From contig CM059452.1 in NCBI GenBank assembly GCA_030390025.1, forward strand, positions 6,572,001-6,636,000: DNA of 64,000 nt. The letters are read 5' to 3'. The translations under genes were made by a program, and so were the position numbers. Positions 1,201-47,878 of the stretch are shown in pieces. Position 1 is the first letter of the stretch, and every line of letters begins with the position of its first letter. This DNA comes from Squalus acanthias (Eukaryota). The notes beneath the pieces were generated by a model, which ran no database searches, was not told the DNA's origin, and was given only the letters and a program-made list of their open reading frames with translations.

Positions 1201-1239
1201 CACAGTGATGGGAACGAGCTAAAGCCTCGTCCAATAACT
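1201..1239 (+). other. 23-RSS
   Basis: cacagtg + 23 bp + ccaataact. Confidence 0.85.
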
Positions 1240-8198: not shown

Positions 8199-8365
8199 GG
8201 GCTCAGTGCGCAGTAATACACCGCGGAGTCTGTCAGTTGTGTTTCAGACACATTCAGCGGGACGGTTCGGCTCAAATCATCGACCTTCGCTGAAAAACGG
8301 ACCCCTGGAACTTTCCCTTCGATCTCGCTGTATCTTGTTCTCTGCAGCAGATACTCTATGGATCC
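8199..8365 (-). pseudogene. 3' half of a TCR V segment with RSS
   Basis: GSIEYLLQRTRYSEIEGKVPGVRFSAKVDDLSRTVPLNVSETQLTDSAVYYCALS, then cacagag (8192-8198) and acacaaact. Confidence 0.8.
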
Positions 8366-8431
8366 GGAGCCTCTGATCTACAAAGCGGAGGGAGTTTTTG
8401 CACGACGGTTTAACGGGTTTCCATCACTGTG

Positions 8432-8979
8432 AGTCTCAGGGCACAGTAATAAACTGCAGTGTCGGTCAGCTGCAGCCCCGAGATGGTTAAACTGGTGAAT
8501 TTAGTGGAGCTGTCAAGTTGTGCTGAAAAACGGGTTTGGGCAAAATGTGCTTTATCTTCAGAACCGCTCGCGTATTTCGTCAGAATAAACTCGGGCGGTG
8601 TTCCAGGGTGTTGCCGGTACCAGTACAAATTATAGCTGCCGCTCTGTGTAGTATCATAGGTACAGTTTAAAGTCACCGCTTCTCCTTCTGTCTTAACACC
8701 TGAGGACAGTGGCTCAGTGAGAGAATCTCCAAGACTCAGATCTGAAAAACATGTTCAAACAGGAAAAGATCAGACCGGCGGGTGTTTGAAATTCAGATTA
8801 AAAACATGTTAGAAATTAGAGTAAAGATGAAATGTGTCTAATTCAGCATCATTGTCATCATTTCACCAATAACAACATCTGGGTTCCCGCAGTCAGGGGG
8901 AGAATTGATGTTTACTGGGGAGGAATTACTTACTGAGAAGTGATATAATGATGAGGAGCGGTGCGAGACGGATACACAT
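8432..8979 (-). CDS. TRAV: TCR V segment, open frame (leader 8934-8979, V exon 8432-8741)
   Basis: Leader MCIRLAPLLIIISLL/gtaagt; LNCTYD..WYRQHPG..DTAVYYCALRL; RSS heptamer 8425-8431 + 23 bp + gcaaaaact. Confidence 0.88.
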
Positions 8980-9884
8980 GATGCTCCCTGAATCTGTAGC
9001 TCTGCAGTCCGGGAAATCCTCTGTGGGAGCAGAAATGCAGATCCCCTCCCCACTACACTGCTGATCCAACCAATGCCAAACAGGTAACAGCGGCAGCAAT
9101 CTCTCCAATAACACAGGGCAGGCAAGGCGGGTCAGAGCGAGAGCAGCAAACGGAGGCTGTGGGCGTGGCTGCCGCGGGAAGTGTATTAAAAACATATCCC
9201 GCAATATTACTTTAAATTGAACTGTTTGAAGTAGAAAAGGGAAGCACGGGATCACAACATAAAATGTAAATATAGGACAATATCTTCTTCATACTCGGAA
9301 AGTTGTGAATGCATGGAATAATTTTCCGAATACAGTGGTGGAGGAACATATCCTAGAATCTTTTGAGGAAAAGTTTGAGGCCACAGTGGGGCCGGGAGAT
9401 AGTATCTCTCTGGATGGATGGGACAATACGGGCCGAATGGCTTCCCTCATTCAGAATGATCTTGTGAATAGGAACAGGGCAGGACTTTTACCTTGTCGTT
9501 ACATGCAGTCGCCACCGGAGGGCAGTGCGAGGATGTGTTCACTGTGTTGGTTTCAGTATCGAGGCGGTCACAGCCTGAGAACATTGTTCAGTAACTTTAT
9601 TGAAGACATTAAAGAAGCAGATTCGGAAATAGAGGCTTTACTTTTAAATTAATATCAGTGTTTATATGGCTTATTATCAATTTTCATTATGATTTATCAA
9701 TGTTATTATTACTATTGATATGTTCTAAATATTAGCATAAAAATCCCACTCCATCCTTCTGGGGAAGCACACGGAATAAAATTTTAAAGGGAGATTTTAG
9801 GACTGGTATCAGGAAATTCCTCTTCACAAACAGGGAGTGATCAATGTGTGGAATAAACATAACGAGGGGCCGTTGTACTGCTGC

Positions 9885-10250
9885 CCGATGTGAGCTGACA
9901 GACAGTGTGAGCTGGTGTCAGTGAGAAACATTGAGTGTGGACGGCCCGGTGTGAGCTCAGAGACAGTGTGAGCTGGAGTCATTGAGAAAAACTGGGTGTG
10001 GGCGGCCCGGGCTGAGTTCAGAGACAGTGTGAGCTGGTGTCAGTGAGAAATACTCAGTGTGGGCGGCCCGGTGTGAGCTCAGAGACAGTGTGAGCTGGTG
10101 TCAGTGAGAAATACTCAGTGTGGGCGGCCCGGTGTGAGCTCAGAGACAGTGTGAGCTGGTGTCAGTGAGAAACACTGAGTGTGAGCGACCCGCAGTGAGC
10201 TCAGAGACAGTTTGAGCCGGTGTCAGTGAGACACTGAGTGTGGGCAGCAC
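9885..10250. repeat. About 61-bp tandem repeat, about 6 copies
   Basis: gagacagtgtgagctggtgtcagtgagaaatactcagtgtgggcggcccggtgtgagctca repeated. Confidence 0.9.
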
Positions 10251-10429
10251 GAGTTGGGTAAACCCCGAGATGCAGCTTGTTTTGTTTATTCGCCAGGAAG
10301 AAGCCTCTGAGTTGGACATGAATCGGAGTTTGGCTCCTTGTTAATTACCCTGAATATATTATCCGTGTCCTGGTTCTAACCCGACCTCTGTGTACATTTC
10401 TTTCAGCCTCCTTTTCATCTGATCGGATA

Positions 10430-10763
10430 ATGCTTCGGATTTACAGAGTTTCCCTGCTGATTTACACTCTGATCTGCACGGATGTGAGCGGTGAGGATGA
10501 GGTGAAGCAGCTCCCTCGGCGGGTGGTTGTTAGTGAAGAGGGAAGCGTGTCCATCAACTGCACCACGACCTTTGTGTTTAGCGTCCTGCGCTGGTACAGA
10601 CAGCACCCGGATCAGACCCTCCAGCATCTGATGATGGCCACAAGCGGGACCGATCAACACGGGAGGATCACTGCTTCAATCGGGGGAGGCAATAAACTCA
10701 GTGCCCTGACTGTGAGAGACGCGCGAGTGACAGACAGCGCCACCTATCTCTGCGCCGTGAGCC
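10430..10763 (+). CDS. TRAV: TCR V segment with leader and V apparently in one exon
   Basis: Continuous ORF MLRIYRVSLLIYTLICTDVSG-EDEVKQ..INC..WYRQHP..DSATYLCAVS; RSS cacagtg 10764-10770 + 23 bp + acagaaatc. Confidence 0.82.
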
Positions 10764-11609
10764 CACAGTGTAACAAACAGGCGGAAAGTCCGCACAGAAA
10801 TCTGCGCGGAGGGGGAGAGCCGCTCTGCTGTGTTTGGAGCAACGGGATTGGGAGGGGCCCGGTTATAATAATCGGAGGACAGAGGGAGTGAGCACAGAAC
10901 AATTCTGATATATTGAAGAGAATGATTTAAAGAAAGTGAGAAATGAAGAGAATTGGAAACATAGACAGAGAAAAAGAAAGAGAAAACCCCAAAGAAAGAA
11001 TGAGAGAGAGAAAGAGAAAAAGCGGTGTAATAATGAGAGTGTAGAGGACAGCAAATTAGGAAAGATGGGAAAGAGAAATGAAAGAAAGTGAGAAATAACG
11101 AGTGAGAAACACAAAGCTAAAAGGTGAGAAAAGCCCTAAAGAAAGAGATTCAGAAATAAAGTAAAATGTCCTTTCTTTTAAATTCACTCACTTTTCCCTT
11201 CCCTATTTACAAAGCTGAATTGTCTGAAACAATACACATTGTCTCCCAATAACAGACCTCTGGAAACTGCCCCATCGATAAACGTACACTTTATTCTGTC
11301 CATTATCCTGACAGTGTGAAATTCTCAGAGTCACCGGCAGAGGGCGCCGTGGTCACATGATTGTTGCCGTTATCAACTGGAAATGATGGAGACAAAGCTT
11401 GCGGTAACACTGCCCGCGCCAGCCCCGCCCACAGCTTCCGTTTGCTGCTCTCGCTCTGAACCGCCTTGCCTGCCCTGTATTGGTGGAGAGATTGCTGTCG
11501 CTGTTCCCTGTTTGGCATTGGTTGTTTCAGCAGTGCAGTGCGGCGGGGATCTGTATTTCTGCTTCGACAGAGGATTTCCCGGACTAGAGAGTAACAGACT
11601 CGGAGCATC

Positions 11610-12121
11610 ATGCGGAACCGTCTCGCACCGCTCCTCATCATTATATCACTTCTCAGTAAGTAATTCCTTCCCAGTAAACATTCATTCTCCCCGTGACTGC
11701 TGGAGCCCCGGTGTTATTGTTGCTAAAATGATGATGATTATGTTGCTAGAGATGACATTGATGGTGATGGTGGTGGTGATGATGATGATGATGATGATGA
11801 CTATTATTTTGTTTTAGAATGGAGCCACCAAGACACAGTGGAACAGCCGGTCCCTGAAATGACGGTTGAAGAGGAAAGTAATGTCATACTAACCTGCACC
11901 TTGAAAACAAGCGATACTAACCCTTATGTGTACTGGTACAGTCAGCACCCCGGGAAGCCTCCACAGTACGTGCTTCGTCTTATCGGAGGGAATGTGAACC
12001 GGAACCCAGACGTTACTGACCGATTCAATTCTACGTTTAATAAAACTACCAAGATTACCGAGCTAACGATCGGCAAAGCCCTGATCTCCGACACCGCCGT
12101 GTATTTCTGTGCCATGAGCCC
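11610..12121 (+). CDS. TRAV: TCR V segment, intact (leader 11610-11655, V exon 11818-12121)
   Basis: MRNRLAPLLIIISLL/KWSHQDTVEQP..LTC..WYSQHPG..DTAVYFCAMS; cacactg 12122-12128 + 24 bp + acaaaaacc. Confidence 0.9.
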
Positions 12122-12290
12122 CACACTGCTGCAGAGATATAGCGGATCCCGTACAAAAACCCACACTGAGAGTTCCAGTTAGTGCTCACCAGAGGGCGCT
12201 CTCACACCGATATACAAGCGATAATTCAGCCTCCACAGTGAGAGTCACAGGGACCTTCTAAAAAGGGCGAGAAAGCAGAACACTCCACAA

Positions 12291-12600
12291 GTCACCGCTT
12301 CTCGTTTTGTCTTAATTCTTGAAGACAGCGTCTGAATGACAGAATCACCATGTTTCAGATCTGAAAAAACATGTTCAAACAGGAAAAGGACAGACCAGCG
12401 AGTGTTTAAAATTCAGATTTATACCATGTTGGAAATTAGAGACAAGATGAAATGTGTGGTGATCCACCATCATCATCACCATTTCACCAACAATAACACC
12501 TGGGTTACAGCAGTCAGGGGGAGAATGGATGTCTACTGGGGAGCAAATACTTACTGAGAAGTGATATAATGATGAGGAGCGGTGCGAAACGGTTCCACAT
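12291..12600 (-). pseudogene. Truncated TCR V (leader 12555-12600 plus first about 70 nt of V exon)
   Basis: MWNRFAPLLIIISLL/gtaagt, intron like that of the 8432 gene, V exon start ..GDSVIQTLSSRIKTKREAVT then breaks off. Confidence 0.8.
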
Positions 12601-14550
12601 GATGCTCCCTGAGTCTGTAACTCTGCAGTCCGGGAAATCCTCTGTGGGAGCAGAAATACAGATCCCCGCCCCACTGCACTGCTGATCCAACCAATGCCAA
12701 ACAGGGAACAGCGGCAGCAATCCCTCCAATAACACAGAGCAGACAAGGCGGGTCAGAGCGAGAGCAGCAAACGGAAGCTGATGAAGAGGGAGTGAGAAGA
12801 ATGAAATAGTCGCCTGGTGCTGACTTTCTCTCGCAACGACCACATTCTCTGAAGTGGAATGATGAAGGGGATGGGCACAGGAGCTATTTTAAGTAGCAGC
12901 GTGTCCCAGTGCCCGACTGCAATGACCCCAAGAGGAGTATCAGCATTAAAACCGAACCCGCAATATTACTTTAAACTGAGCTGTGGAAGTAGAAGCTGGG
13001 GACACGGGGTCAATGTATAAAAGCTCATTTTAGGGCTGGCACCAGGAAATTCTTCACACACACAGAGTGATTAATGTGTGGAATATACTTCTGGATAGAG
13101 TGGCCGAGGGAAATACCCTGGAATCGTTTAAGGAAAAGTTTGAGGCTGCAGTGAGGGGCGGGAGTTAGGATCTCTCTGGATGGATGAGACAAGACAAGCC
13201 GAATGGCCTGCCTCATTCTCAGTGATCTGGTGAACTGCAACACGACGGGATTTGTACCTTGTAGTTACAGGTAGTCGCCACCAGAGGGCAGTGGGCGGAT
13301 GTGTTCACTGTTGGTTTCAGTGTGAGGGCGAGTTACAGACGGACAACACCGTTCAGTTCCTTTATTTAATAAAGGGATTCAGAAATAAAGGCATTAATTT
13401 CAAATGGAAGCATTGTTTTATTTTAATGTTATTGTGATTTATTAAAGTATTATTAATGACATGTTGTAAATATTTTAATGACCAGCTCACCGTGGTATCA
13501 CTGAGCCTATCCGCTGCTCGCATCCTCCCATTCTGCTCAAACATGTCAGTCATTCCCCATTTCATTCATATAACAGGTGGCGTTTGTACAATTTACCGTA
13601 TCGTTGTGTTTATGTCCCACACGACCCGCTGGCCGTCTATATTCCCCTTTATATCGGCAGTGGGTAGATCTAATGGTTAGTGAGCAGCTCTTTTAATCGG
13701 AGCCTCCGGCACTGATACCAGAACAACATTAACTATTTCCCTTTACTGCCCCCACCGCACAGATTGCACCTGTTTAGTGAATTTAGATCCCATTGCATCT
13801 GAAAACAGAATGTGGACGAGTTGTTGCCCAAACAATGCGACATTTATGTCTTTATCCGTTCAGGGACCTGCACTCATCAGTTAAAGACAGCAGCAAGTAG
13901 ATCGCACCGAGGGAACGGGGTTGTGCTGATTGTGTCCAGGAAGAGAAGCGAGAAAGGACAAATATACAACCCGTGACTCAGGGATGAGCGGGTGCAGCTT
14001 GTCACATGATATTCAGAAATTGTCTGATTGGTTGGGAAACATTTTGGCACATTGTTGAGAGACGGAATGAATCCAATTTTAGAATAGTTTGCTCCAAGTC
14101 TGTTTCTCATTCATCTCAAACAATTCACAACTGAATATACATCATTAACATCCACAAGATATCAATCATTGTGTGCCCGTCTGTGTTTATTCTGGTATGT
14201 GTGTCTGTGTGTGTTTGAGTGTGTGTGTGTGTGTGTCTGTCTGTCTATGTGCAGGTGTCTGTGGTCATGTGCTTGTTTCCAATGCTCTGTGTGAGGCTTG
14301 TACCTGACACAGGAGTGCGCTACCTGGTCACTTGTTAAAGAGCTTGCATCTCAAGCAAAGTACAACTGAATATACGTCATTAACCTCCAAAGATATCAAA
14401 CATTCTGTGTATTTTTGTTAATGTTGGTGTGTGTGTAATGTAATTCCTATTCTTAAGATTGCAACTGTTAATGGGACACAATGACTTCAGGAATTTCTTC
14501 ACATTTCACCTTAGTTAGAGAGCGACAGAGATAGAATGAAAGGAAAAGAC

Positions 14551-14585
<35 letters not shown>

Positions 14586-14877
14586 AACCGTGACTCAGAT
14601 AGAGACACCGAGTTAAATAGACATATATATAGAGAGAGATAATGACACACACAGACAGGCAAGGAAAGAGTTTGAAGAGATCCTGCAGTAATTGGACACA
14701 AATAACACTCATTGGTGCAAAGCTGAAGACAGTTCTGAGAGACCAGCCAATCATGTCCTGGGAAACGCCCCTCAGTTTCTCAATAAGTTAAGCCTGCCCC
14801 TGATCTGGGTTTAATCTTTAATATCGCACATGTTTAGAACATTCTGTTATTTTCTGTCGAACTCTAAACCAGACATC

Positions 14878-15317
14878 ATGTGCTCCCCGTGTTCTTTACT
14901 AATAATAATGGTCGTGCTGCCCAGTGAGTCTATGTTTAAATGGCCAGTGTGTGTTCCATGGGTTGTATTCACTGCCAGGCTTTTCACACATTCTGTATTT
15001 TGTTACAGGTACGAGTGGAAAAGACGCAGTATTTCAGGATCCGCCAGAATTAACCGCTCAGGAAGGACAGACCATAATACTGAACTGTCGTTACTCGGCA
15101 GAGTACACTGGCTCAACCCTCTTCTGGTACATCCAGTATCCCGGGGAAGCTCCGAGATATTTACTGAAGCGATATAGCTCGGTGTCCGGAGAAAAGGCTC
15201 CAGATACCCCAGAACGGTTCTCTGCTGATTTGGACCAAGACAACAAAACGGTTCCTTTAAATGTCTCCGGAGCGCTCATCTCTGACTCTGCCGTGTATTT
15301 ATGTGCGCTGAGCGCCC
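14878..15317 (+). CDS. TRAV: TCR V segment, intact (leader 14878-14923, V exon 15009-15317)
   Basis: MCSPCSLLIIMVVLP/STSGKDAVFQDP..LNC..WYIQYPG..DSAVYLCALS; cacactg 15318-15324 + 23 bp + acaaaaact. Confidence 0.92.
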
Positions 15318-15712
15318 CACACTGTTACAGGGGCGCAGTCAGTCCGTACAAAAACTAGCAAAGGACTCTCACCTCCTCTCAATGAATCAGATCTGTGACC
15401 TGGATTATGATCAGATAATAGAACGGAAACCAAATTATAAAGACGAGTTTGGCTGAATGGCCTGTTTCTGTGCTGTACACAGTGTAATTCTATGTAATAT
15501 CCCCATTTATATCGGCTGTGGGTAGTTCACATGGTCCGTGAGCAGGTGTTTTAACGGGACCCTCCGGCACTTATACTAAACAACATAACCATTTCCCTTC
15601 ACTGCTCCCAACGCACATACTGCCCCTGTTAAAGGGCGAACATTGGGTTTAATCCCCGTCCAGTTCTCTGTTGTGAGGAGAACAATTTCACTCCGTTCCC
15701 CGCTCCCCGCTC

Positions 15713-15870
15713 TGACGTCATGAGTTGGAGAACAAAGGAGCTGTGAGATGATTGGATGATTGGGAGAACAAAGGAACTGTGAGCTGATTGGATGAATTGG
15801 AGAACAAAGGACCCCTGAGTTGATTGGATGTCACCTGTTGACTCTGTCAGGAATGAACCAATCGGCAGAG
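15713..15870 (+). promoter_or_regulatory. Putative V promoter: CRE, 3x (aacaaag + inverted CCAAT), E-box
   Basis: tgacgtca 15713-15720; three ggagaacaaagg..tgattgg units; cacctg; conserved in paralogs at about 60640-60790 (-) and 62808-62960 (+). Confidence 0.6.
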
Positions 15871-15964
15871 AGACGGATATTACTCAATATCTTCCCAACT
15901 CTTGACTAAAACAATTACATGTTCAACCCGTTCTGTTCAAATCCGCCATCAACTCTCTGCAAAC

Positions 15965-16488
15965 ATGTTGGGTGGGACTTTTTACTCAGTCCTCACAGCT
16001 GCAGCTCTATTAAATGGTAAGTTCACAAGTTACACAAACTTCCTCTTGCAGGTGTCACTAACATAGAGAATCTTTTAACTGTGTTTCTCTATACTTGCCA
16101 TGCATTCCGTCACCTTTATTATATTAGTTATAATTAAATGACAGTGAGAGCTTACAGTTCTGTATTTCTAAATTTCTGCAGGTGTCAGTGGTGCGGACTC
16201 GGTCTCACAGGGGCCGGTTACAGCGATGCAGTTTGAAGGAGACTCGGTGACCATCAATTGCAATTATTCGACCACTGCTACTTTCTATTTCTTACAACTG
16301 TACCGTCAGGACCGGGACAAAGGCCCCACATTCTTGATCTACATCCCTTCTGGTGGGGATGTTTCCAAAGCAGAGGGGGCGGGGGCTCGATTTTCAGCAT
16401 CTCTCGACACTTCGAAAAGTGAAGGGAAATTCACCATCGGCGGCCTGCGGCTGTCTGACAGCGCGGTGTATCACTGCGGGCTGAGAGA
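15965..16488 (+). CDS. TRAV: TCR V segment, intact (leader 15965-16016, V exon 16182-16488)
   Basis: MLGGTFYSVLTAAALLN/GVSGADSVSQGP..INCNYS..LYRQDRDKGP..DSAVYHCGLR; Leu at the conserved Trp position, also in paralog 60009; cacagtg 16489-16495 + 23 bp + acaaaaaca. Confidence 0.85.
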
Positions 16489-18018
16489 CACAGTGACAGG
16501 AACCAGAGGGAGCCTCGTACAAAAACACTGCTGGAACATAACAAGGTCAGCGGGATAGCGGGCAGTGTGGAGAGAAACGGGGACTTTCTAAACTTGTGAC
16601 CAGAAGGTGCTGATTTAAAATATACCCAAATAAACAGCAAGCAGGGAGCAACTGATAAGCATTGGGGAAACTTTCCTCTGGTGCTTCTGGGTTGAATACA
16701 TCCTGAGCATAATGAAAAGATGTGTTTAGAGAATTTATACCAGTTCATAAATTAAAGATATTGCGGCAGAAACACTGCCCAAACAATTTGACATTGTGTT
16801 CCAGCCGTTCAAGGAGCTGTACACACCAGGCAAACCCAGCGGCAGGTCTATAACACCGAGGGAACGCGCTGAATGTCTGCAGGAAATATGATCAAAAATT
16901 TGTATTTACATAAAGTCTTATTCATTGTGTTCAGATTCCCCTAAGTGCTTCTGATGTGCGGTCAAGTAATAACTGAGTTACATATTTAGACTGATTTGTT
17001 TCTGAATAAACCACCTATCATCGTTATTTTGATTAATCTAAATTTTGAAACTTGTTTTATTCGTGTTACTAGCATCACCTTATCTATCAAGCGCAGTTTA
17101 TTTCTTGGTTAAGCTCTAATTGCCAGAACACGGCGAAATTCACCTTTCTTCGTGTCATCTGGCATTTTCTTAAGAATCTGTCCCGCAGCACCGCGTGCAA
17201 TGTTTGGGCCAGCCACCAGGGGGCGGCGGGACTCCACCCTTCCGCTCAGTGAAGTCGCCGCCTTAGCTTCAGATGGAGTTTGTCAACTGAATATGAGGAA
17301 GCAGTTGGCTGCCGGAAATTATTGCAATGGAAAGGGGTTCGATCGAAACCAACTCCTGATGTGACGATCTGAAACACAGAGGAACCGTCAATTCACCAAA
17401 TTGGTACAATATTTATTTAAAAACCAAGGTGGTGACACCGAGAATTCTATATACCTTTAATGAACGACCACTGACGGTGAAGGAAGGGGAGCGGATACAA
17501 TGATCAGTGTGAGGTGATGTCGGTCACGTGTTGAATTGGTTCAGGATCATTTTTTAATTCATGTTTTTAATTCATGTGGACTTCGCTGGCAAGACTGGCA
17601 TGTACTTTCCAGTTCTACTTGCACTGATACAACTGGCGGTCTTGCTGGGCCACTTCATAAGGCAGCTAAGAGTCAACCACATTGGTGTGGGACTGGACTG
17701 GACTCACCATTTCAGGACAACGGGGGACCGGCAATAAAGGCGGCCTCGCCAGCGACACCTGCAGCCCGAGAATGAATTAACACGCCACTTCTATTTATCC
17801 AATCAAACATTGGTCTCTCTCTCTCATATATCCAATCATCGCAAGGACCGTTCACGGACGGTTCCGATTGGTTTAAACTGGAGCACGTGATTTGTCATTG
17901 AAGAATATTGCCGCGAGCTGCTCAGTGCAAAAACTGGATCAGCTTCCCAGCAAAGGAGAGAGTATTGGAAATCAGCTCGACCCGGAGAGGCCCACAGTGG
18001 CGGGGATTGTCGGAGACC

Positions 18019-19099: not shown

Positions 19100-19655
19100 G
19101 CATCCTGCAGTTTTGGTCTCCTTACCGAAGGAAGGATATACTTGCCATAGAGAGAGTCCAACGATGGTTCACCAGACTGATTTATGGGATGGGAGGATTG
19201 TCCTATGAGGAGAGATTGAGTAGACCAGGCCTATATTCTCTAGATTTTAGAAGAATGAGAGGTGACCTCATTGAAACATACAAAATTCTTACAGGGCTCG
19301 ACAGGGTAGATGAAGGGAGGATGCTTCTCTTGGCTGGGATGTCTAGAACCAGGGGTCACAGTCTCAGAATAAGGGGTCGGCCATTTAGGACTGAGATGTG
19401 GGGGACATTTCTTCACCCAGAGGGTTGTGAATCTTTGGAATTCTCTACCCCAGAGGGCTGTGGAGGCTCAGTCGTTGAATATATTTAAGATAGATGTCAA
19501 TAGATTTTTGGATGTTAAAGGAATCAAGGTATATGGGGATAGTGCAGGAAAGTGGAGTTGTGGTGGAGGATCAGTAATGGTTTTATTGAATGGCGGAGCT
19601 GGCTCTTGGAGCCGAATGGCCTACTCCTGCTCCTATTTATTATGTTCTTATGTTA
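19100..19655 (+). mobile_element. CR1 LINE 3' fragment
   Basis: QFWSPYRRKDILAIERVQR..RMRGDLIETYKIL; tail gccgaatggcctactcctgctcct. Confidence 0.9.
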
Positions 19656-19669
19656 CCTGAGATAAGGCC

Positions 19670-19940
19670 TTTTATAATATAAACAAAGTCATGGGCTGTA
19701 ACAAATAAGGCAGGGCCTAGTGCAATAATTACTGAAACAGCAACTGGTGTAATATAAACTGAGGCAGGGTCTAGTACAGTAATAACGGAGACAGGGTCTG
19801 GTGTAATATAAACTGAAACAGGGCCTAGTGTAATATAAAGAGAGACAGGGGCTAGTGCAGTAATAACTGAGACAGGGACTAGAGTAATATAAACTGAGAC
19901 ATGGTCTAGTGTAATATAAACTGAGACAGGGCCTCGTGTA
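19670..19940 (+). repeat. 27-bp minisatellite, short array
   Basis: gtgtaatataaactgagacagggcctagt units. Confidence 0.85.
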
Positions 19941-20934
19941 ATGAGAGAAATAATAGTCAGATAATTACAAATTTATGAACCCCATGTCAGGTACAGTTTC
20001 ATTTTTACCATCACTTACACCAATCATCACACACTCGAGGTGTATATCAGGAAATTCTGTGTGATGCTGAGGTGATCACTGGACAATAATGCGCAGAGAC
20101 TGGTGGGTAGCTGCTCATTATCCTCGGTGTGATTTAATCCCCTTTCCAACTGAATACTGCGGACAGTCATGCTTGACTTGGTAACGGAATGGTCAGTGAC
20201 ATCGCTTTCTAAACAAGAGCACTCAAGAGAATCGGTTATTAATCAATGTAAAATATATTAAGCAATTTGCAATTACATTCTGAATACAAGAAAATGTTCA
20301 AAAATAATTGTGAAGATAATCATTTATCATTGCAGAATGCACTTGCAAACATCAAAAATGATGTATTTCGTACACTCACATTGACACTCACACATATATC
20401 AAACACTCTGTATGTGATCTTTTCAGTTGTTCCTCTCAACCAGATGGTAAATGATCCGGTGGACATTAGGACCCTGCAGCCGCCCATCGGCGGTGCTGTG
20501 AGGTCACGATTCCAGGTGCTGTCACACAATCAGTGGGTGACGTGAAAGCTAAATAGAAAATACTGCAGGAAAGAAATCCTTAACATTAAAAAGATTGTGA
20601 GCAATTGGCACATTCCAACACAAGTGTGAATTAGTAAACTTTAACACAACGGAGTTTGCTACTAAATAGGGCAAAGGGCAGGGCACTATTGCTCACCTTT
20701 AGTTCTGCCCCTCAATCGCAGTTCATCTCTGGCAGATTGTTACAAGATTCACCCCATCCTTTCAACACAAATATTACCGACAAAATACCAGTTCAATTAG
20801 AAATTGCACACTGCTCCTGATACTGATCAACAACAGTAAAGGTATGCTTGAAACCATAAATGTTTGCATCCTCCCGCCCACTCACACATATATCTTTATT
20901 TACATTAATACCTATCTATCCATCCAGCAGAGAT

Positions 20935-22770
20935 CTGGTCTAGAACAATGATAGCTGAGAAAGGGCCTAGTGTAATATAAACAGAGACAGGGTCTAGTGT
21001 AATATAAAGAGAGGCAGGGTCTAGTGTAATATAAACAGAGACAGGGTCTAGTGTAATATAAACAGAGACAGGGTCTAGTGTAATATAAACAGAGACAGGG
21101 CCTAGTGTAATATAAACAAAGACAGGGTCTACTGTAATATAAACAGAGACAGGGCCTAGAGTAATATAAACAGAGACAGGGCCTAGTTTAATATAAACAG
21201 AGACATGGTCTAGTGTAATATAAAGAGAGGCAGGGCCTAGTGTAATATAAACAGAGACAAGGTCTCGTGTAATATAAACAGAGACAGGATCTAGTGTAAT
21301 ATAAACAGAGGCAGGGTCGAGTGTAATATAAACAGAGACAGGGTCTAGTGCAGAAATAACTGAGACAAGGTCTAGTGTAATATAAACAGAGACAGGGCCT
21401 AGATTAATATAAACAGAGACAGGGTCTAGATTAATATAAACAGAGACAGGGTCTAGTGTAATATAAACAAAGACAGGATCTAGTGTAATATAAACAGAGA
21501 CAAGGTCTAGTGTAATATAAACAGAGACAGGGTCTAGTGTAATATAAACAGAGGCAGGGTCGAGTGTAATATAAACAGAGACAGGGTCTAGTGCAGAAAT
21601 AACTGAGACAAGGTCTCATGTAATATAAACAGAGACAGGGCCTAGATTAATATAAACAGAGACAGGGTCTAGTGTAATATAAACAAAGACAGGATCTAGT
21701 GTAATATAGACAGAGACAGGGTCTAGTGTAATATAAACTGAGACAGGGTCTAGTGTAATATAAACGGAGACAGGGTCTAGTACAGTAATAACTGAGACAA
21801 AGTCTAATGTAATATAAACAGAGTCAGGGCCTAGAGTAATATAAACAGAGACAGGGACTAGTTTATTATAAACAGAGACAGGGTCTAGTGTAATATAAAG
21901 AGAGGCAGGGCCTAGTGTAATATAAACAGAGACAGGGTCTGGTGCAATAATAACTGAGACAAGGTCTAGTGTAATATAAACAGAGACAGGGCCTAGATTA
22001 ATATAAACAGAGACAGGGTCTAGTGTAATATAAACAAAGACAGGATCTAGTGTAATATAAACTGAGAGAGGGTCTAGTGTAATATAAATAGGGACTGGGT
22101 CTAGTGTAATATAAACAGAGAATGGGTCTAGTGTAATATAAACAGAGACAGGATCTAGTGTAATATAAACAGAGGCAGGGCCTAGTGTAATATAAACAGA
22201 GACATGGTCTCGTGTAATATAAACAGAGACAGATCTAGTGTAATATAAACAGAGGCAGGGCCTAGTGTAATATAAACAGAGACAGGGCCTAGTTTAATAT
22301 AAACAGTGACACGGTCTAGTGTAATATTAACAGAGACAGGGCCTAGTGTAATATAAACAGAGACAGGGTCTAGTGTTATATAAACAGAGACAGGGTCCAG
22401 TGCAGTAATAACTGAGACAGGGTCTAGTGTAATATAAAGAGTGACAGGGCCTAGTTTAATATAAACAGTGACACGGTCTAGTGTAATATAACCAGAGACA
22501 TGGCCTAGTTTAATATAAACAGTGACACGGTCTAGTGTAATATAAACAGAGACAGGGTGTAGTGTAATATAAACAGAGACAGGGTCTAGTGCAGTAATAA
22601 CTGAGACAGGGCCTCGTGTAATATAAACAGTGACAGCATCTTTTTCAGTAATAACTGAGACAGGATCTGTTGCAATATAAAGAGTGACAGGTTCTAGTGC
22701 AGTAATAACTGCGACAGGGTATAGTGTAATCTAAATAGTGACAGGTTCTAGTGCAGCAATAACTTGAGGC
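20935..22770 (+). repeat. 27-bp minisatellite, about 1.8 kb
   Basis: gtgtaatataaacagagacagggtcta repeated dozens of times. Confidence 0.97.
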
Positions 22771-27780: not shown

Positions 27781-29304
27781 TAATGTGCTGGACAGACCCT
27801 CCTGCTGACTGCTGCTACTGACAGGATGTCTGAGACGCTGGATATATTTCCTATCCTGAGAGATGGGAACAGTTACACACAGTTACACAACTAAATAATT
27901 AAAATTGACTCCAGTACTGTTGCTAGGCAGATTTGTTTATCAATAGGCCTCACTCACAATGTTAAGTGTTTGAAGTTGGCTTTCAGCCAAGCGGTCAGCA
28001 CTGAGGAAACAGACCTTTGATTCACTGCACAGAACCGCCAGATGCTTCCTGTAAATGACATTGGGTGTTCGAGCCTCACTGGCGGCAGTCGGCTGGGCTG
28101 CTGCCAAATACTGTGTGGAGCAGATTGGAGTGAATATGAATTGGGAAACAAGATGGGATTTAACTATTTGAACATTAAATTATTCAGCAGCGCTCTTACA
28201 AGAAAGAAACATTTTACATGGTATAACATCTAAAGAAAGACTTTCGGTAAATTCCTTGCTCACAATATTATAAAATAGGTTCGGAAAAATTATAGGATCC
28301 ATATACTAATTAATTAAAAATTCCAAATAAAGATAATTCGAGATAATTCAGTCGGTTTATTCAGCACTGCACGAAGTGCTGGAGAGAGATTTTAATGACT
28401 CCACACCCACACTGTAATGAGATCAGTGGGAATCGCAAAGTAAATAAAACAATCGGTGGAATTTCCTCGATCCCGCTGCACTTCCTTGAATATTCTCAGA
28501 TTAGTGAGCCTGATTGAAACTAAGGGCTCCCTTATTACTGATTAGCAGCCGCGCACTGGGCCGTTTAATTTTGCTGATTTGAATTCCTAAACAAGCCCTC
28601 TCAGAGCCCGGCTACCAAAGGTCAGAGAAATGCTCAGTTTGTGATCTGTTTCAGCGGGAGATGAAGCATTTATTCTTGTGATATTCTGTAACATACCGCT
28701 ATGTCCTGATATACTGTGTTCCTGATACCAGTGTATGTTACACAGTCGGTCGCTATTAAAGTTCGCTGCAATGATTTAGATGCGGGGGTTTGCTGATCGC
28801 ATTATCGGTTCTGATTAACCAGCTTCTCTTTACCAAAAGCTGATCTGAAGCGGGCGGGCCCCACATTCTTATGTGTCTCCGTCAACTCACTCCTTAATAT
28901 CAGGCAAGCGAATTTAGTTTAAACCTAATTTTATAAAGGACTGTCTTAGGGTCACAGACTCAGGGGCAGTTAGAGAAATGCAATGAGAGACACTTGTATA
29001 ATGTGAGGGCTTTCTACTCATCTCCGGATCCAAATCGTGTAGCAAAAGCCATCCACATTGTAAATAGAATCACATCACCCATCTCCCGCATTCAGATAAA
29101 TAGACCTAAAGCGATTCATAATATAGGGGATACTTTATTGGTACAGAATAGATAGCGGGAGATGGAGTCACACATACTGGCAGTCTCTTTAGACCCTGAT
29201 AATGTAATTTAATCTGAGAGATTCACATCTCCTGTGAAGCAGTGAGGAAATAAAGGGATTTAATTGACAGTCCAGATGTGAGTCCATTCTGTTGGTGATG
29301 TGGA

Positions 29305-29395
29305 GGGTGTGACGTGGATCCAGTAGCCGCCTCTATCAGGGAATCAATAGGCGGCGCCTGTAACCTCGCCCCCTTCTACCGGGTATTTAACGGCC
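29305..29395 (+). promoter_or_regulatory. Putative IgH V promoter (CRE-like tgacgtgg at 29310, TATA-like gtatttaa at 29383; no ATGCAAAT octamer seen)
   Basis: Motifs about 100-175 bp upstream of leader ATG 29483. Confidence 0.5.
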
Positions 29396-29482
29396 GGTCA
29401 CTGGGACCGCAATACAACAGTCCGGGAGCGGGTTTGCTCAGTGAGTTCTTGTCAGAACCATTTCCCACACATTGCCAGGAGG

Positions 29483-29970
29483 ATGAGGTCGGCGATTTCT
29501 CTCAGTCTGTTGCTGGCTTTCTTATCCGGTGAGTAGTTTTTATTGTCCAAGTCTCTCACTGTTACTGTCTCAGTGTTAGTCTCTCTCTGGAATGTTACAG
29601 AGTCAGGAATCATTTCACCAGGATTAATTCTCGGGGTCTTTGATTGTTTTTATAGGTGTCCAGTCGGATGTCGTGTTGACTCAGCCAGAGGCAGGGACCG
29701 GGAGTCCCAGAGGCTCCCTGAGACTGACCTGTAAAACCAGCGGGTTCAATCTTGGTAGCACCTACATGTACTGGGTCCGACAGGTTCCCGGACAGGGGCT
29801 GGAGTGGCTGCTTGAGTACTACAGTTCATCGAACAAGAACTACGCCCCAGGGATTAAGAGCCGATTTACTGCCTCCAAAGACACTTCAAACAACATCTTC
29901 GCTTTGGACATGAAGAACCTGAGAACCGAAGACACCGCCATCTATTACTGTGCAAGATACTACAGTGGGT
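29483..29970 (+). CDS. IGHV: IgM heavy-chain VH already joined to a D segment (leader 29483-29528; VH 29656-29957; D 29958-29970)
   Basis: [67 protein letters not shown] followed directly by tactacagtgggt (YYSG). Confidence 0.95.
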
Positions 29971-30008
29971 CACGGTGCTGTACAGAGCGAGCTCCTCATA
30001 CAAAAACC
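29971..30008 (+). other. 22-spacer RSS 3' of joined VD
   Basis: cacggtg + 22 bp + acaaaaacc. Confidence 0.92.
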
Positions 30009-30321
30009 CCAGACAGCGAGTTTGCTCACACCTGCGATCACTGCCACGGCAGGAGCGTCGAAGAAAACGAGGCTTAAATTAAAATAATGGGTAAAAGTAA
30101 CATAGATTTATAAAAATGTCTAAAAGTGTTCTGCTTTATTAGTGTTGATTGTCGTGCTAAGTCTGCACAGATGCATCAGAAGTTTTCCAATTCCCTTTAT
30201 AAAGATAATGACCAGCACAAACTGAAATATCTCACTGGTTCACTCTTAGGGGAGTCGGAATCAGGGTTTTGAGAGCGCTGTGGAATTTCATCTCTGTATT
30301 TTACAGTTAACAGTCCGCCGG

Positions 30322-30349
30322 AGTATTGGGCACGGCGAGTCTCACTGTG
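30322..30349 (-). other. 12-spacer RSS 5' of joined DJ, degenerate nonamer
   Basis: agtattggg + 12 bp + cactgtg. Confidence 0.75.
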
Positions 30350-30409
30350 GTACAGTGGATGGCGCCATGGGAGACTGGGGCCAAGGCACCATGGTGACGG
30401 TGACTGCAG
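30350..30409 (+). CDS. IGHJ: IgH D segment joined to JH (DJ)
   Basis: gtacagtggatgg runs without any RSS into AMGDWGQGTMVTVTA, followed by gtaag donor at 30410. Confidence 0.9.
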
Positions 30410-33400
30410 GTAAGAAACATTCACTCTTTCAGCAACTGTTGTATTTGTGCCTTTATTTTATATTTCTGTTTATTTCAATAATTCATTCATTCACTGAAAC
30501 TTGGGTTCGGTGGATTCTGTATTGAGATTTTTTGCAATGTTTCATTTGATTCTGCTGCAAAGGGATAATAGATTTAAACAGTTTCTTCAGGAAAAATGTT
30601 GTTGAGGGATTGAGTCCCTGATTGATGTGATTTGGTGTTTATCTGCTGATGAGACTGTGAGCCTGGGTTACTTTAAATACCCAACGGTTGTTGAACTGTT
30701 TGGCGTTTCTACAATGTTTACTCTCGGTGAAATCTAATAGTTGTAGGTTTTCTGATCAAATGTAAACATTATGTGACTAAATGTGTTTGAAATAAGATTG
30801 CAGACAGAAAACAGAAAGCTTTAGCGGTCAAAAATAATCTTAAGATATTTTAATTTATTTTTATTTGTGATATTTACATTGTCAGCTTTTAATCTAATGT
30901 TCACCAACGGTCATATTCAATACGTGAAATATTACTGTAATTTATAACTAAATAATTAACAAATTTGTAGCCTGAATGAGATTTAACTTAATATAAATAA
31001 AGTTATCATATGTAGTAATATCACTCAATATTACAACAATATGCTATATCAATAGTAATTTATTAAACCTGATCCGTCTACTCACAATTCCGCTGTCATT
31101 ATTTTATATTTTTGTTTATTTCAATAATTAATTCGTTCAGTGATAGATGGGTTCGCTGGATTCTGTATTGAGATTTTTTTGCAATGTTACATTTGATTCT
31201 GCTGAAAGGGTTTATAGAATGAAGCTGCTTCTCCACAAAACGTTCTGTTGCGGGATTCAGCCCCTCAGTGATGTGATTTGCTGTTTATCTGCTGAGGAGA
31301 GTGTGTGCCTGGGTTACTTTGAATAAGTAAAGTTTGTGAAACTGTTTGGAGTTTCTGCAATGTTTAATCTCGGTGACATCGAACTGCTGCAGGTTTTCTG
31401 ATCTGTTTAAACTGTTTGAAAGATGATTGTAGGCAGACAACAAGTAGGTTTTATAAATCAAAAATCATTTAAAATAATTTAATGCATGTTTTTATTTAAG
31501 TGAGAGTTACAGATTCAACTATTAATCTATGGTTTACGGTGCTCACATTTAATAGGTGAAATGTTACTGAATTACGAATTATATAATTAACAATTGGCAG
31601 GTTGAAGGAGAGTTAAATTAATATAACTCAAACGATTAGAATGCGGTAATATTGCCCAATATCACTAAATATGTTGCAGTATTAATATTAATGTATTAAA
31701 CATTATTCGCCTTCCACAATTCTGCTGTGCACTGGTCACAATTAACCTGAGCGGAGAATTTTAGAGGCTGGAGACAATTTCTGATTATGTCTGAAATTAT
31801 TTTAATAACAGCAGACTGATTCCACCGCAGTGTTCAGTTTAATGAGGGTTTGAAATTAATTGTTATCTCCCTGTTTCACACAGATGAATGACAGATTGTA
31901 TTTAATTATGCATTAAATGCGAGTATAAATTGCAGTTTGTAAATGTAATAAATCTGCCGGGTTATTAAATTCTTACTGTGCAGCGGAAACCATGTTATTC
32001 CTTCAATATTATTTGTTGTTTGATAGCGAGACAATTATCACTAAACTAATCTTAAACAGTTTGTAAGATCATAGGCTGAGCGGTCGCTGGCAGTCAAAGA
32101 ATTGTTCATATGATTCTATTTAAATTCACGGAAGGTGCAGACTGCGTAAGGCTGGAGACAGACAAATAACCCATTGACATTCAAGCAGATTAATTAAATT
32201 ACAAAAGGTTAATATTAGTTTTGAATTTAATAACAACATCCTGTCTCCCATAGCTGTGCTGTATACGGGATAGAATTATAGACAGTGAACAGATTACATC
32301 TGAGAGTTATGTTTAATTCTCATTAATGTTAAATTGATCAACAAAATCTCTCCTCCATCTGCTCATTAAATTTCAGTGTCGCAGATGGTCTGATTGATTT
32401 GTTCTCCGCCAGTTTTACATTGATCATTCTGGAACTGATTTTCAATAAATAGCAGAATATATTTAATAATTAATTTACGGGCATTGTGTGAATTACGGGA
32501 GTAAAGTATAAAAAGATTGTCTGTGTTATTAAATAGCGGAGTCTCTGTTACTGACTGCAAACTGGCCGGTTGTCTTTTAATTCACGAAAATAGTATTTAT
32601 AGTTAAGATTGAGGACAATGTTTAAACTCGAGAGCCCTGCTTTAGTAAACACACGGTGTTACAGTCCATCGGTAGTTAGTGAGATGTGACCACGGCCAGA
32701 CTTTGAACTATTTAAAATAGTCCACTCCTAAATCCATCATGTGAAATCCACTCTGAGAAAAGATGGAGTTTATGTTGTATCAGAGAGTTCAGAAACATGC
32801 AGAGTTTACAAGTGTGTAGATAGAGAGCGGGAATGTATTAGAAGTTAGTGACCATTTTAACTTATTCAAATGTGATTTGATTTAAATAAAAATAATATAT
32901 TTGTCTGAATGTCTTTATCTATTAATATGATTTTTAATATTTTAATATTGATAAGTGTCATGTTAATTTAATTGAAACCCTATAAGTTCACAAGTTACCA
33001 GGCAGAAACAGGATTAAAATTAATATCAACTAATTTTAATATAATGCAGCTAACATCAATATTAACTTAGAATATAATATGAGTGCGAATTTATTAAACA
33101 TAAATGACCTCCCACATTTGCGTTGTATACTGGACAGGATTACAGTTACTGTAAAATCTCAAGGGTTGGAGAGAATTTTAAATTATGTCTAAAATTAATT
33201 TAGAAACAATACATGTCTTACTCAGCTGTGCTCAGCTCGAGAAGGTGTCGCCGCAGATTTCAAAGAATTAACTTCGATGATTTTACCGGTTATATTTAAT
33301 TATGAAATTATATTTACCCAGTGGTTCCTAGTTCGTTAAATTCTTACTCTGTCACGGAGTCCCTGTTATATGCAGCAAATTACCCTGGAATGTGAATTAT

Positions 33401-38395: not shown

Positions 38396-38695
38396 CGACA
38401 CAGTCTCCTCCCACCCTCTACGCCCTGCTCTCCTCCTGTGAACAACCCAACACCGGCGGCCCCGTCACCTACGGCTGTTTGGCGATGGACTACTTCCCGG
38501 AAATCACCAGCCTTTCCTGGAGTAAAGATAAAGAGCCGATCACCACTGGATTGAAGACCTACCCGTCAGTGTTCAACAAGAAGGGAACCTACACCCTGAG
38601 CAGCCAGTTAACCATCACCGAGTCAGAGGTGGGGAGCAGCACAATCTACTGCCAGGTTCGACAAAGTGGGTCGGACTTAAGCGTCAAAATGCCAG
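38396..38695 (+). CDS. IGHM: IgM constant exon Cmu1
   Basis: AG/GT bounded, phase 1; [40 protein letters not shown]; retains the N-terminal Cys expected for light-chain linkage. Confidence 0.95.
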
Positions 38696-38789: not shown

Positions 38790-39990
38790 GTGGACAGTTT
38801 TGGTCTCCATATCACACTTAGTGTACTTTGCAGAGTTCCAGTCTCCATATTACACTTAGTGCATTGAGCACAGTTCTGGTCTCCATATCACACTTGGAGT
38901 GCTGAGCGCATTTCTGGCCTCCATATCAGATTTATAATACTGTGCACAGTTCTGGTCTCCACAACATACTTAGAGTATTGTGAACAGTTGTAGTCTCCAT
39001 ATCACACTTAGTGTACTGTGCACAGTTCTGGTCTCCATATTACACTTACAATTCTGTGCACAGTTCTGTTCTCCATATCACACTTACAATACTGTGCACA
39101 GTCCTGGTCTCCATATCACACTTGGAGTGCTGAGCACAGTTCTGGTCTCCATGTCACACTTAGTGTACTGTGCACAGTTCTGTTCTCCATATCACACTTA
39201 GTGTACTGTGCACAGTCCTGTTCTCCATATCACACTTACAATTCTGTGCACAGCTCTGTTCTCCATATCACACTTAATGTACTGTGCACAGTTCTGTTCT
39301 GCATATCACACTTAGTGTACTGTGCACAGTTCTGTTCTCCATATCACACTTAGTGTACTGTGCACAGTTCTGGTCTCCATATCACACTTAGTGTACTGTG
39401 CACAGTTCTGGTCTCCATATCACACTTACAATTCTGTGCACAGTTCTGTTCTCCATATCACACTTAATGTACTGTGCACAGTTCTGTTCTCCATATCACA
39501 CTTAATGTACTGTGCACAGTTCTGTTCTCCATATCACACTTAGTGTACTGTGCACAGTTCTGTTCTCCATATCACACTTAGTGTACTGTGCACAGTTCTG
39601 TTCTCCATATCACACTTAGTGTACTGTGCACAGTTCTGTTCTCCATATCACACTTAGTGTACTGTGCACAGTTCTCGTCTCCATATCACACTTTGAGTAC
39701 TGTACACAGTTCTGTTCTCCATATCACACTTAGTGTACTGTGCACAGTTCTGTTCTCCATATCACACTTCCTGTACTGTGCACAGTTCTGTTCTCCATAT
39801 CACACTTAGTGTACTGTGCACAGTTCTGTTCTCCATATCACACTTAGTGTGCTGTGCACAGTTCTGTTCTCCATATCACACTTAGAGTACTGTGTAGAGT
39901 TCTGGTCTCATAGCACACTTCCTGTACTGTGTAGAGTTCCGGTCTCCATATCGCTCTTAGAATACTGTGCAAAGTTCTGCTCTCTGGAAG
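38790..39990 (+). repeat. 38-bp minisatellite in Cmu1-Cmu2 intron
   Basis: tgtgcacagttctgttctccatatcacacttagtgtac, roughly 30 copies. Confidence 0.97.
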
Positions 39991-40102
39991 TGCCAGGTTA
40001 GTGTGAGCCTGACAGTAAAGGGCCTGTTAAAATATAAGGACACTTTGCATTTCTTAATCATTTATTTTATAAGGAATGTCATTAACATGTGTTCTTTTGA
40101 AG

Positions 40103-40420
40103 GTTGGAAACGTGATATCGTCCCTCCAACTGTGATCCTCACCCTGAGTTCCAATGAAGAAATCATCAGCAGCAGGTCTGTAACCGCCGTGTGTTCAATC
40201 ATCGATTTCCGTCCAAAGTCACTGACCGTGAATTGGCTGAAGAAAGGACAACTCATGGATTTAGGCTTCGTTACCTCTCCCGTCTTTGAAGTGAACGGGA
40301 ACTTCTCGGCGACCAGTCGGCTGACATTCCCCGCCAGGGATTGGTTCGCCGACTCAGTCTATACCTGCCAGGTCTCTCATCAAGGGGTCACCCAAAGCAG
40401 AAACATCTCCAGATCTAAGG
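40103..40420 (+). CDS. IGHM: IgM constant exon Cmu2
   Basis: [45 protein letters not shown]; AG/GT bounded. Confidence 0.95.
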
Positions 40421-42751: not shown

Positions 42752-43060
42752 ATGAGATCCAATGCAACGATCCAGAAATCACTCTTCCGCAACCGTCACT
42801 AGAACAGGTCTTACTGGAGGCGACGGTGACCTTAACCTGCGTCGTGTCTAATGCTCCTTATGGAGTCAACGTGTCCTGGACCCGAGAAAAGGAGACTTTG
42901 AAATCAGAGATTGCCGTCCAACCCGGAGAGGCTCCCAACAGCGTGATCAGCAACTTAAACATCTCGACACAAGCCTGGCTGAGTGGGGATGAGTTCTACT
43001 GCGTGGTGAGCCATCAGGATATGCCGACTCCTATAAGAGATTCCATCCACAAGGAAAAAG
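42752..43060 (+). CDS. IGHM: IgM constant exon Cmu3
   Basis: [47 protein letters not shown]; AG/GT bounded. Confidence 0.95.
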
Positions 43061-43578: not shown

Positions 43579-43970
43579 CTAAACATCCGCGGGAACCGTC
43601 CGTGTCTGTCCTCCTGCCCCCGGCAGAAGAAGTCTCCGCTCAGAGGTTCGTCAGCCTCACCTGCTTAGTGAGAGGTTTCTCCCCCCGAGAGATCTTCGTC
43701 AAGTGGACCGTCAATGACAAGCCGGTGAATTCCGGCAACTACAAGAACACCGAGGTGATGGCGGAGAACGGCAGCAGTTCCTTCTTCATGTACAGCCTGT
43801 TATCCATTGCAGCGGAGGAGTGGGCCAGCGGCGCTTCTTACTCCTGTGTGGTGGGACATGAAGCGATCCCCTTGAAGATCATCAACAGAACGGTTAATAA
43901 ATCCAGCGGTAAACCCAGTTTTGTCAACATTTCCCTTGTTCTGATGGACACCGTCAATTCTTGTCAATGA
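43579..43970 (+). CDS. IGHM: IgM constant exon Cmu4 plus secretory tailpiece
   Basis: [62 protein letters not shown]; tailpiece N-glycan site and penultimate Cys; internal donor after 43908. Confidence 0.97.
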
Positions 43971-44399: not shown

Positions 44400-45825
44400 G
44401 AACTGTACCCCCACTCCCCCACCAGAGAGAGGGGAAAGGGTAATTGTTAACCCACTGTACCTCCACTCCCCCACCAGAGAGAGGGGAAAGAACATAAGAA
44501 ATAGGAGCAGGAGTAGGCCAATCGGCCCCTCGAGCCTGCTCCGCCATTCAATAAGATCATGGCTGATCTGATCCTAACCGCCAATCTACTATCTACTATC
44601 ACAGAACCATCTCCTGCATCTAACAGAATTGCACACACGAAATAGGAGCAGAATCAGGCTACACGGTCCCTGGGCCCGCTCCACTACCCACAGGGCCATG
44701 ACCGATCCGAACCTAGACTCATGTCCAAATTCCTGCCCGCTCCCCGTAACCCTTAATGCCCTTTACTTCTAGGAAACTGTCTATTTCTGTTTTAAATTTA
44801 TTTAATGATGTAGCTTCTACAGCTTTTTGTGGCAGCATATTCCATGGACCTACCACCCTCTGAGTGAAGTAGTTCCTCCTCATCTCAGCAATTGTTAACC
44901 CACTGTACCCCCCTCTCCCCCACCAGAGAGAGGGGAGAGGGCAATTGTTAACCCACTGTACCCCCACTCCCCCACCAGAGAGAGGGGAAAGGGTAATTGT
45001 TAACCCACTGTACCCCCACTCCACCACCAGAGAGAGGGGAGAGGGCAATTGTTAACCCACTGTACCCCCACTCCCCCACCAGAGAGAGGGGAAAGGGCAA
45101 TTGTTAACCCACTGTACCCCCACTCCCCCACCAGAGAGAGGGGAAAGGGCAATTGTTAACCCACTGTACCCCCCACTCCCCCACCAGAGAGAGGGGAAAG
45201 GGCTATTGTTAACCCACTGTACCCCCACTCCCCCACCAGAGAGAGGGGAAAGGGCAATTGTTAACCCACTGTACCCCCACTCCCCACAAGAGAGAGGGGA
45301 AAGGGCAATTGTTAACCCACTGTACCCCCACTCCCCCACCAGAGAGAGGGGAAAGGGCAATTGTTAACCCACTGTACCCCCACTCCCCCACCAGAGAGAG
45401 GGGAAAGGGCAATTGTTAACCCACTGTACCCCCCACTCCCCCACCAGAGAGAGGGGAAAGGGCAATTGTTAACCCACTGTACCCCCACTCCCCCACCAGA
45501 GAGAGGGGAAAGGGCAATTGTTAACCCACTGTACCCCCACTCCCCCACCAGAGAGAGGGGAAAGGGCAATTGTTAACCCACTGTACCCCCCACTCCCCCA
45601 CCAGAGAGAGGGGAAAGGACAATTGTTAACCCACTGTACCCCCACTCCCCCACCAGAGAGAGGGGAAAGGGCAATTGTTAACCCACTGTACCTCCCACTC
45701 CCCCACCAGAGAGAGGGGAAAGGGCAATTGTTAACCCACTGTACCCCCACTCCCCCACCAGAGAGGGGAAAGGGTAATTGTGAAGCCACTGTACCCCCCA
45801 CTCCCCCACCAGAGAGAGGGGAGGT
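44400..45825. repeat. 52-bp minisatellite, interrupted by a CR1 3' end at about 44490-44890 (-)
   Basis: aattgttaacccactgtacccccactcccccaccagagagaggggaaagggc tandem; LINE piece MRRNYFTQRVVGPWNMLPQKAVEA. Confidence 0.95.
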
Positions 45826-47601: not shown

Positions 47602-47729
47602 ATTCCTCAGACCACATCTTGATTGAAGACTATGAGGAAGAGAGCGGCAACATCTGGACAACCGCTTCCACATTCATCATCCTGTTCTTCCTGAGCATGG
47701 CCTACAGCGCTGCCGTCACTCTAGTGAAG
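47602..47729 (+). CDS. IGHM: IgM transmembrane exon TM1
   Basis: DSSDHILIEDYEEESGNIWTTASTFIILFFLSMAYSAAVTLVK; antigen-receptor TM motif; AG/GT bounded. Confidence 0.95.
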
Positions 47730-47869
47730 GTGAGAAGATTCAATCCACTCACACTTCGATCTGACTGAAGCGGTTTGACAAATCTCTAAAAGTTTCATTG
47801 ATAAAAACCCTGAGATAAATGCCCCAAACCACTAAATCTCTGCTTCATTCTTTTATCCCTCTTTTACAG

Positions 47870-47878
47870 ATCAAGTGA
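47870..47878 (+). CDS. IGHM: IgM transmembrane exon TM2 (IK-stop)
   Basis: cttttacag|atc aag tga; aataaa at 47942 and 48335. Confidence 0.88.
   Translation: MK

Follow-up and report, generated by a model that had tools for sequence, protein, structure and literature searches.

How many of the joins that build an antibody heavy-chain V exon are left to the lymphocyte, and how many can be inherited ready-made, is the question raised by a locus of Squalus acanthias (GCA_030390025.1, contig CM059452.1, positions 6,572,001 to 6,636,000 of the forward strand), where a VH segment runs directly into D-like letters and a second set of D-like letters runs directly into JH. Partly joined heavy-chain clusters are of interest both as a record of RAG action in germ cells and as natural experiments on how much junctional diversity an antibody needs, and what makes the present copy useful is that unjoined members of its family are available for comparison at both joins. 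The whole stretch analyzed, 64 kb in length and referred to below as the window (positions are counted from its first letter), holds one complete IgM heavy-chain minicluster, with all of its exons on the plus strand. Our preferred reading, to which we give a probability of roughly four in five, is an inherited, partly pre-joined (VD-DJ) IgM heavy-chain minicluster of an elasmobranch.

The cluster is an elasmobranch IgM heavy-chain minicluster, intact from leader to TM2, and its leader, V, four Cmu, secretory tail and TM exons are all open and carry good splice sites. The leader exon (29483-29528) starts with an ATG at 29483 and has a spliced RNA contig to support it; 17 of its 19 residues agree with Heterodontus francisci HV01, which is the nearest match and not an identical one. 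The V exon follows an acceptor ending in ttttatag, and its VH coding part (29656-29957) is recognized as a Pfam V-set domain (E 5.1e-17), the best database match of the exon being, at 82% identity, a Heterodontus francisci heavy-chain V region, with Chiloscyllium (up to 79%) and Scyliorhinus models following in a range of 74-79%. Junction letters and JH together occupy 30363-30409 (..AMGDWGQGTMVTVTA), with JH translating as WGQGTMVTVTA before a gt donor at 30410. The constant part consists of Cmu1 (38396-38695; Pfam C1-set, E 4.5e-14), Cmu2 (40103-40420; C1-set, E 2.2e-16) and Cmu3 (42752-43060; C1-set, E 8.2e-10), each with its splice sites read, and of Cmu4 with the secretory tail and stop (43579-43970; C1-set, E 9.5e-23), whose boundaries were likewise read and where residues 5-127 of Cmu4 plus tail can be aligned (E ~1e-49) to the corresponding region, Cmu4 and tailpiece, of IgM mu chains of solved structure. 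Two further exons, TM1 (47602-47729) and TM2 (47870-47878), both read by translation and splice sites, jointly translate as ..NIWTTASTFIILFFLSMAYSAAVTLVK, and we take this pair (47602-47878) to be the IgM-type TM exons.

Between V and Cmu1, the borders depart from a simple row of separate segments. VH ends in TGTGCAAGA, that is TGT GCA AGA (29949-29957), and a 13-letter D-like piece, tactacagtgggt (29958-29970), abuts it with no recombination signal sequence (RSS) between, giving CARYYSG in translation at this border. Directly behind this piece stands an RSS (29971-30008) with the heptamer CACGGTG (29971-29977; six of seven letters as in CACAGTG), a 22-letter spacer (29978-29999) and the nonamer ACAAAAACC (30000-30008), which matches at all nine letters. 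After intersegment DNA (30009-30321) comes a second RSS (30322-30349) in the opposite orientation, whose heptamer CACTGTG (30343-30349) is perfect as a reverse complement (7/7), with a spacer of 12 letters (30331-30342) and a nonamer, agtattggg (30322-30330), that agrees at only five of nine positions. The distance from heptamer to heptamer, 29971-30349, is 379 bases. A second 13-letter piece, gtacagtggatgg (30350-30362), then enters J, again with no RSS, and is translated as TVDGAMGDWGQGTMVTVTA at the border; J ends in ..GTGACTGCAG at 30409, directly followed by the donor gtaag. Each of the two 13-letter pieces occurs once in the window.

How much weight the two signals bear differs. Within the window, nonamers with nine of nine matches were found at only four places by the RSS scan (signals at 12122, 29971, 57391 and 62122), each directly after a V domain, and a chance origin of the 22-spacer RSS was rejected on this ground. 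The scan used a nonamer cut-off of 6/9, below which the 5' RSS of D2 falls; moreover, CACAGTG occurs 11 times and CACTGTG 12 times in the window, for a total of 23 perfect heptamers, so that the D2 heptamer taken alone could be due to chance. The credibility of the D2 signal comes instead from its context, namely its place and its presence in unjoined relatives, and not from its own score. Taken as a pair, the two remaining signals have spacers of 22 and 12 letters and thus obey the 12/23 rule, and an untrimmed D1-D2 join would keep the frame open all the way from the start codon of the leader to the 3' end of J.

The identity of the 13-letter pieces can be read from relatives of the cluster in public data. 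Logan contigs of four public runs were aligned on 28300-32800 with a likeness threshold of 90%. X1 and X5 are DNA runs of one organism, from two samples and studies; X7 is a DNA run under another organism label; and X14, from the same organism as X1, has an exon-only depth profile and was treated as RNA. Relatives of the D1-D2 intersegment DNA with at least 90% likeness are present in all three DNA runs. One X5 contig follows the window from 29958 on and is preceded there by a nonamer-like AGTATTTGT, 12 letters, CACTGTG and a single G, which makes it a free D1, with body and 3' RSS as in the window and a 12-RSS on its 5' side. For the second piece, a contig of X1 runs past the second heptamer to 30354 and then continues with a further nine D letters, different from those of the window, and with CACAGCA, which is heptamer-like; it has the structure of a free D2 that keeps a 3' RSS of its own. 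Furthermore, contig 27 of X7 (867 letters) differs from the window at four of 157 letters over 30207-30363, a span that includes the weak D2 nonamer region, then has 402 letters of its own after 30363, and returns at 30374-30681 (15 of 308 letters differ), which amounts to an unjoined D2...J. An X1 contig that reaches 30374 with CACTGTG plus 12 coding letters in front of it represents the free J of a relative.

Because these relatives carry the extra letters as free D segments, the comparison identifies the two 13-letter pieces as D1 and D2, the window D1 being without the first G of the relative's free D1 and D2 being whole. Judged from the contigs, the layout of the family is V / 12-D1-22 / 12-D2-12-type / J, from which the window cluster has lost the RSS pair between V and D1 and the RSS pair between D2 and J. 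In its first letters, AGTATT, the 5' nonamer of the window D2 resembles that of the relative's free D1. In the nurse shark, IgH segments lie ~400 bp apart according to the available sections of one study (PMC2435157), and the spacing in the window fits this value.

The arrangement is best explained by two joins in an ancestor. From an ordinary starting layout, V(23) / (12)D1(22) / (12)D2(12) / (23)J, the V-D1 and the D2-J pairs of RSS, out of three, would have been removed together with the intervening DNA, such that V came to abut D1 and D2 came to abut J. The agent was most likely RAG-type recombination in the germ line of that ancestor, as has been proposed for joined genes of sharks. Left over is the 22-RSS of D1 opposite the 12-RSS of D2, and, much as in a light-chain gene, one somatic deletion across the DNA between them would complete the V exon. 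Both joined borders are set, and trimming and added letters would act at a single central CDR3 junction. On the D2-J border, centered at 30363|30364, stands ATGGCGCCAT (30359-30368), a perfect palindrome of 10 letters that could represent P nucleotides from hairpin opening or a product of chance; the division of the letters at this border among D2, P, N and J needs a free J of the exact lineage. Compared with the J of most family transcripts, the window J differs in one block of three adjacent letters (30371-30373), reading MGDW versus MDYW. The preliminary description had proposed the VD-DJ arrangement from the letters alone, and all the letters that it quoted are present in direct reading, with the relatives in agreement; its further claim, that a single D-D join is left to complete the gene, is supported in that the 22/12 pair obeys the rule and the untrimmed join stays in frame.

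Whether such a cluster is used can be approached through X14. Its depth is 0 upstream of 29206, ranges from 21,589 to 119,353 in the bins from leader to V, falls to 10-18 in the D-D gap and is 3,464 in the J bin. One contig skips from 29528 to 29656 with GT..AG ends, the leader intron being spliced out, and at least six contigs pass 30409 and continue with letters identical to the start of Cmu1 in the window (30/30). Most rearranged transcripts depart from the window at 29954-29958. One contig, with a depth of 49.6, instead follows the window to 29967, has 20 other letters and resumes at 30367, in frame by hand count. It enters J seven letters before 30374 and has the window cluster's own J letters; compared with the window, its VD end is trimmed by three letters and its DJ end by 17, which takes all of D2, and 20 letters have been gained. 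All of the other seven V-to-J joints listed resume at 30374; those of X14, mostly with 24-37 letters between, are assigned to other clusters because they have the usual family J letters at their end.

On these features, the contig joining 29967 to 30367 has the best claim to stem from the window cluster or from an identical copy. The transcript evidence consists of this one contig at 90% likeness, for which a near-identical copy could be the source, and use of the window copy itself is putative. The same contig limits what is germline-set in the finished product. Since the transcript lost all of D2, and its junction was both trimmed and filled, the V-D1 border alone stayed fixed; the middle of CDR3 is thereby no less free than other junctions. 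The earlier proposal that both ends of CDR3 are hard-wired, giving a semi-invariant receptor, is not supported as worded by the one fitting transcript among those listed, with its lost D2 and 20 gained letters, and only the V-D1 part of it was kept.

The upstream region of the cluster was also inspected for promoter elements. No copy of the octamer ATGCAAAT was found on either strand in the 480 bases before the leader ATG; in the region 29000-29483, the one-mismatch site lying nearest is at 29028. A TATA-like tatttaa is present at 29385, and the RNA depth of X14 begins in the bin 29357-29507.

Other readings of the locus have to be set against a pre-joined, inherited cluster. One of these, named as a refuting case when the arrangement was first described, holds that nothing is fused at all and that the 13-letter pieces are the long ends of an ordinary VH and an ordinary JH. 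The weak nonamer before J would speak for it, and a J of 60 letters falls in the range known for JH segments. It is scarcely credible in view of the relatives, in which the first 13 letters are a free D1 between a 12-RSS and a 22-RSS, the second piece is a free D2 lying 402 letters from J, and the free J starts only 12 letters before 30374; moreover, the ordinary layout does not set a 12-spacer JH against a 22-spacer VH. Long V or J ends were accordingly rejected on the contigs of unjoined relatives, and the claim that the extra letters belong to ordinary segments is contradicted by free D1, D2 and J alike. A second alternative accepts the joins and places them in a lymphocyte, the assembly having caught a two-join intermediate at a locus whose germ line is V-D-D-J. 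Such an intermediate does exist, as VD-DJ has been documented in B cells and thymocytes of the nurse shark in the sections available of PMC2435157, and among the contigs listed for the DNA runs none bridges 29957/29958 or 30362/30363, so that a bridging contig from known non-lymphoid DNA is missing from those listed. In addition, the window's letters at positions 29695 and 29709 are shared by none of the aligned contigs, in any of the four runs, and no run is thereby shown to contain the exact window copy. We nevertheless regard a somatic origin as highly improbable. The VD-DJ form is present in the assembled genome, which favors the germ line, since a consensus needs most reads to agree and lymphocyte clones are a tiny part of tissue DNA, such that a rare clone would not be expected to enter it. 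X5 DNA further contains a fully joined VDJ form, with 28 letters between V and J (29954-30374), at a depth of 96.6; the listed X5 contigs with mismatches have depths of ~24-37, which puts the VDJ form at about three times single contigs. A depth of this size, at or above that of a single copy, points to VDJ-joined relatives in the germ line of the same organism. Lastly, two X5 DNA contigs (loose behind 29965) and one X14 RNA contig (to 29969) pass the V-D1 border and only then diverge, which hints that several inherited copies share the V-D1 join. It is thus likely that both joins of the window cluster lie in the germ line.

A germline position could still go together with disuse, and the cluster might be a VD-DJ relic that is rarely or never completed and is carried along in a large, duplicating cluster family. 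Several observations fit such a relic: the 5/9 nonamer on the 5' side of D2, the missing octamer upstream of the ATG, the three-letter block by which J departs from the family J, and the single RNA contig, among those listed, that fits the cluster. Lee et al. 2000, who questioned any use of joined and of partly joined H chain genes, can be counted in its support. The exons are nonetheless all open, with good splice sites; the region of the weak nonamer is kept in the unjoined X7 relative; and the one fitting transcript is rearranged, in frame and has the window's J letters. On balance we find a relic unlikely and prefer a pre-joined cluster that can be completed, noting that the candidate in-frame transcript bears on the doubt of Lee et al. 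about use.

Set among known systems, the cluster probably belongs with the partly germline-joined IgH genes of cartilaginous fish (VD-J, VD-DJ and VDD-J), with which it shares the fusion of V to D1 and of D2 to J, the loss of the RSS at these points and an otherwise unchanged minicluster. VD-DJ germline clusters are named in the portion available of a 2016 review (PMC5192425), and in the searched literature only this review and Malecek et al. 2008 came up, neither of them a primary account that gives the junction letters of such a cluster. Compared with the published partly joined clusters, the junctions of the window are defined against unjoined relatives and accompanied by one candidate transcript. 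The same configuration, with the same RSS pair and a spacing of ~400 bp, is known as the somatic VD-DJ ('2R') intermediate of the nurse shark (Malecek et al. 2008, PMC2435157). According to the sections of that study at hand, however, these intermediates were seen in lymphoid DNA and single cells and not in red-cell DNA, whereas the window form stands in a genome assembly and its family, unlike the '2R' intermediates, has other joined forms in DNA runs.

Other comparisons concern how much of the V exon is fixed in the germ line. The nurse shark IgM1gj, a neonatal gene with a fully germline-joined VDJ, resembles the window cluster in that its CDR3 is partly or wholly germline-set, and it is the model for the possible early-life use suggested in the preliminary description; as far as the available parts of PMC4279169 and PMC5192425 describe it, IgM1gj needs no rearrangement and is without Cmu2, whereas the window cluster needs one join and has four Cmu exons. 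Light-chain-type V-J clusters are alike in that a single 12/23 join completes the V exon, the differences being that in the window cluster the junction is formed by two D pieces, at the center of CDR3, and that the gene is a mu heavy chain. The VD-DJ configuration, the proposed mechanism and a setting among TCR-type V exons are all already in print, and the general picture is unchanged by this cluster.

The surroundings of the cluster were charted with the RSS scan, in which 12 other V segments on both strands (1201-16527 and 57391-62160) flank the IgM cluster. Each ends in a YYC/YFC-type motif, behind which stands an RSS whose spacer has 22 to 24 letters. A homology search returned one unnamed sturgeon match, and a PDB search was dominated by multi-domain scFv chains. 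The flanking segments are putatively of TCR alpha/delta type, in keeping with the setting described by Flajnik et al. 2025 (PMC12227049). The accessible part of that report describes a linkage of IgH clusters to TCR alpha/delta, V exons of TCR type being interspersed among the clusters, and the window cluster, among its 12 V segments on both strands, shows a likewise interspersed arrangement.

The shared V-D1 border and this setting invite a wider and distinctly doubtful reading, in which the V-D1 join was made once and was then copied, giving rise to a used sub-family of VD-D-J, VD-DJ and VDJ clusters with a common border. Trans-rearrangements of Ig to TCR delta are known in sharks. Because the VD unit has kept its 22-RSS and sits inside an array of V segments putatively of TCR alpha/delta type, it could also be passed on, as a V-D made in advance, to TCR delta D segments. 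If true, a copied-join sub-family of this kind would counter the old doubt about joined heavy-chain genes.

Repeats are frequent around the exons. The J-Cmu intron contains a tandem duplication of 646 bp (30448-31740), the copies of which are 80-88% alike, and forms in the DNA runs leave out 647 or 653 letters or step back by 626, suggesting that the copy number of this repeat differs among relatives or individuals. The Cmu1-Cmu2 intron at 38970-40000 is mostly made up of tandem repeats (with repeated open frames CTVHSSVLHITLSVLCTVLFSISHL..), and directly 3' of Cmu4 lies a satellite of ~52 bp units (44452-45790), with long repeated open frames and, on the minus strand, a word of eight letters that returns at intervals of 50-53 bases. 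Another long satellite of short units, on the minus strand (19640-22730; repeated frames ..VSVYITLDP..), lies in the stretch that separates the V array from the IgM cluster. Finally, 52213-56824 holds long open frames of 877 aa on the minus strand and of 321 and 173 aa on the plus strand, which look like a LINE-type endonuclease and reverse transcriptase.
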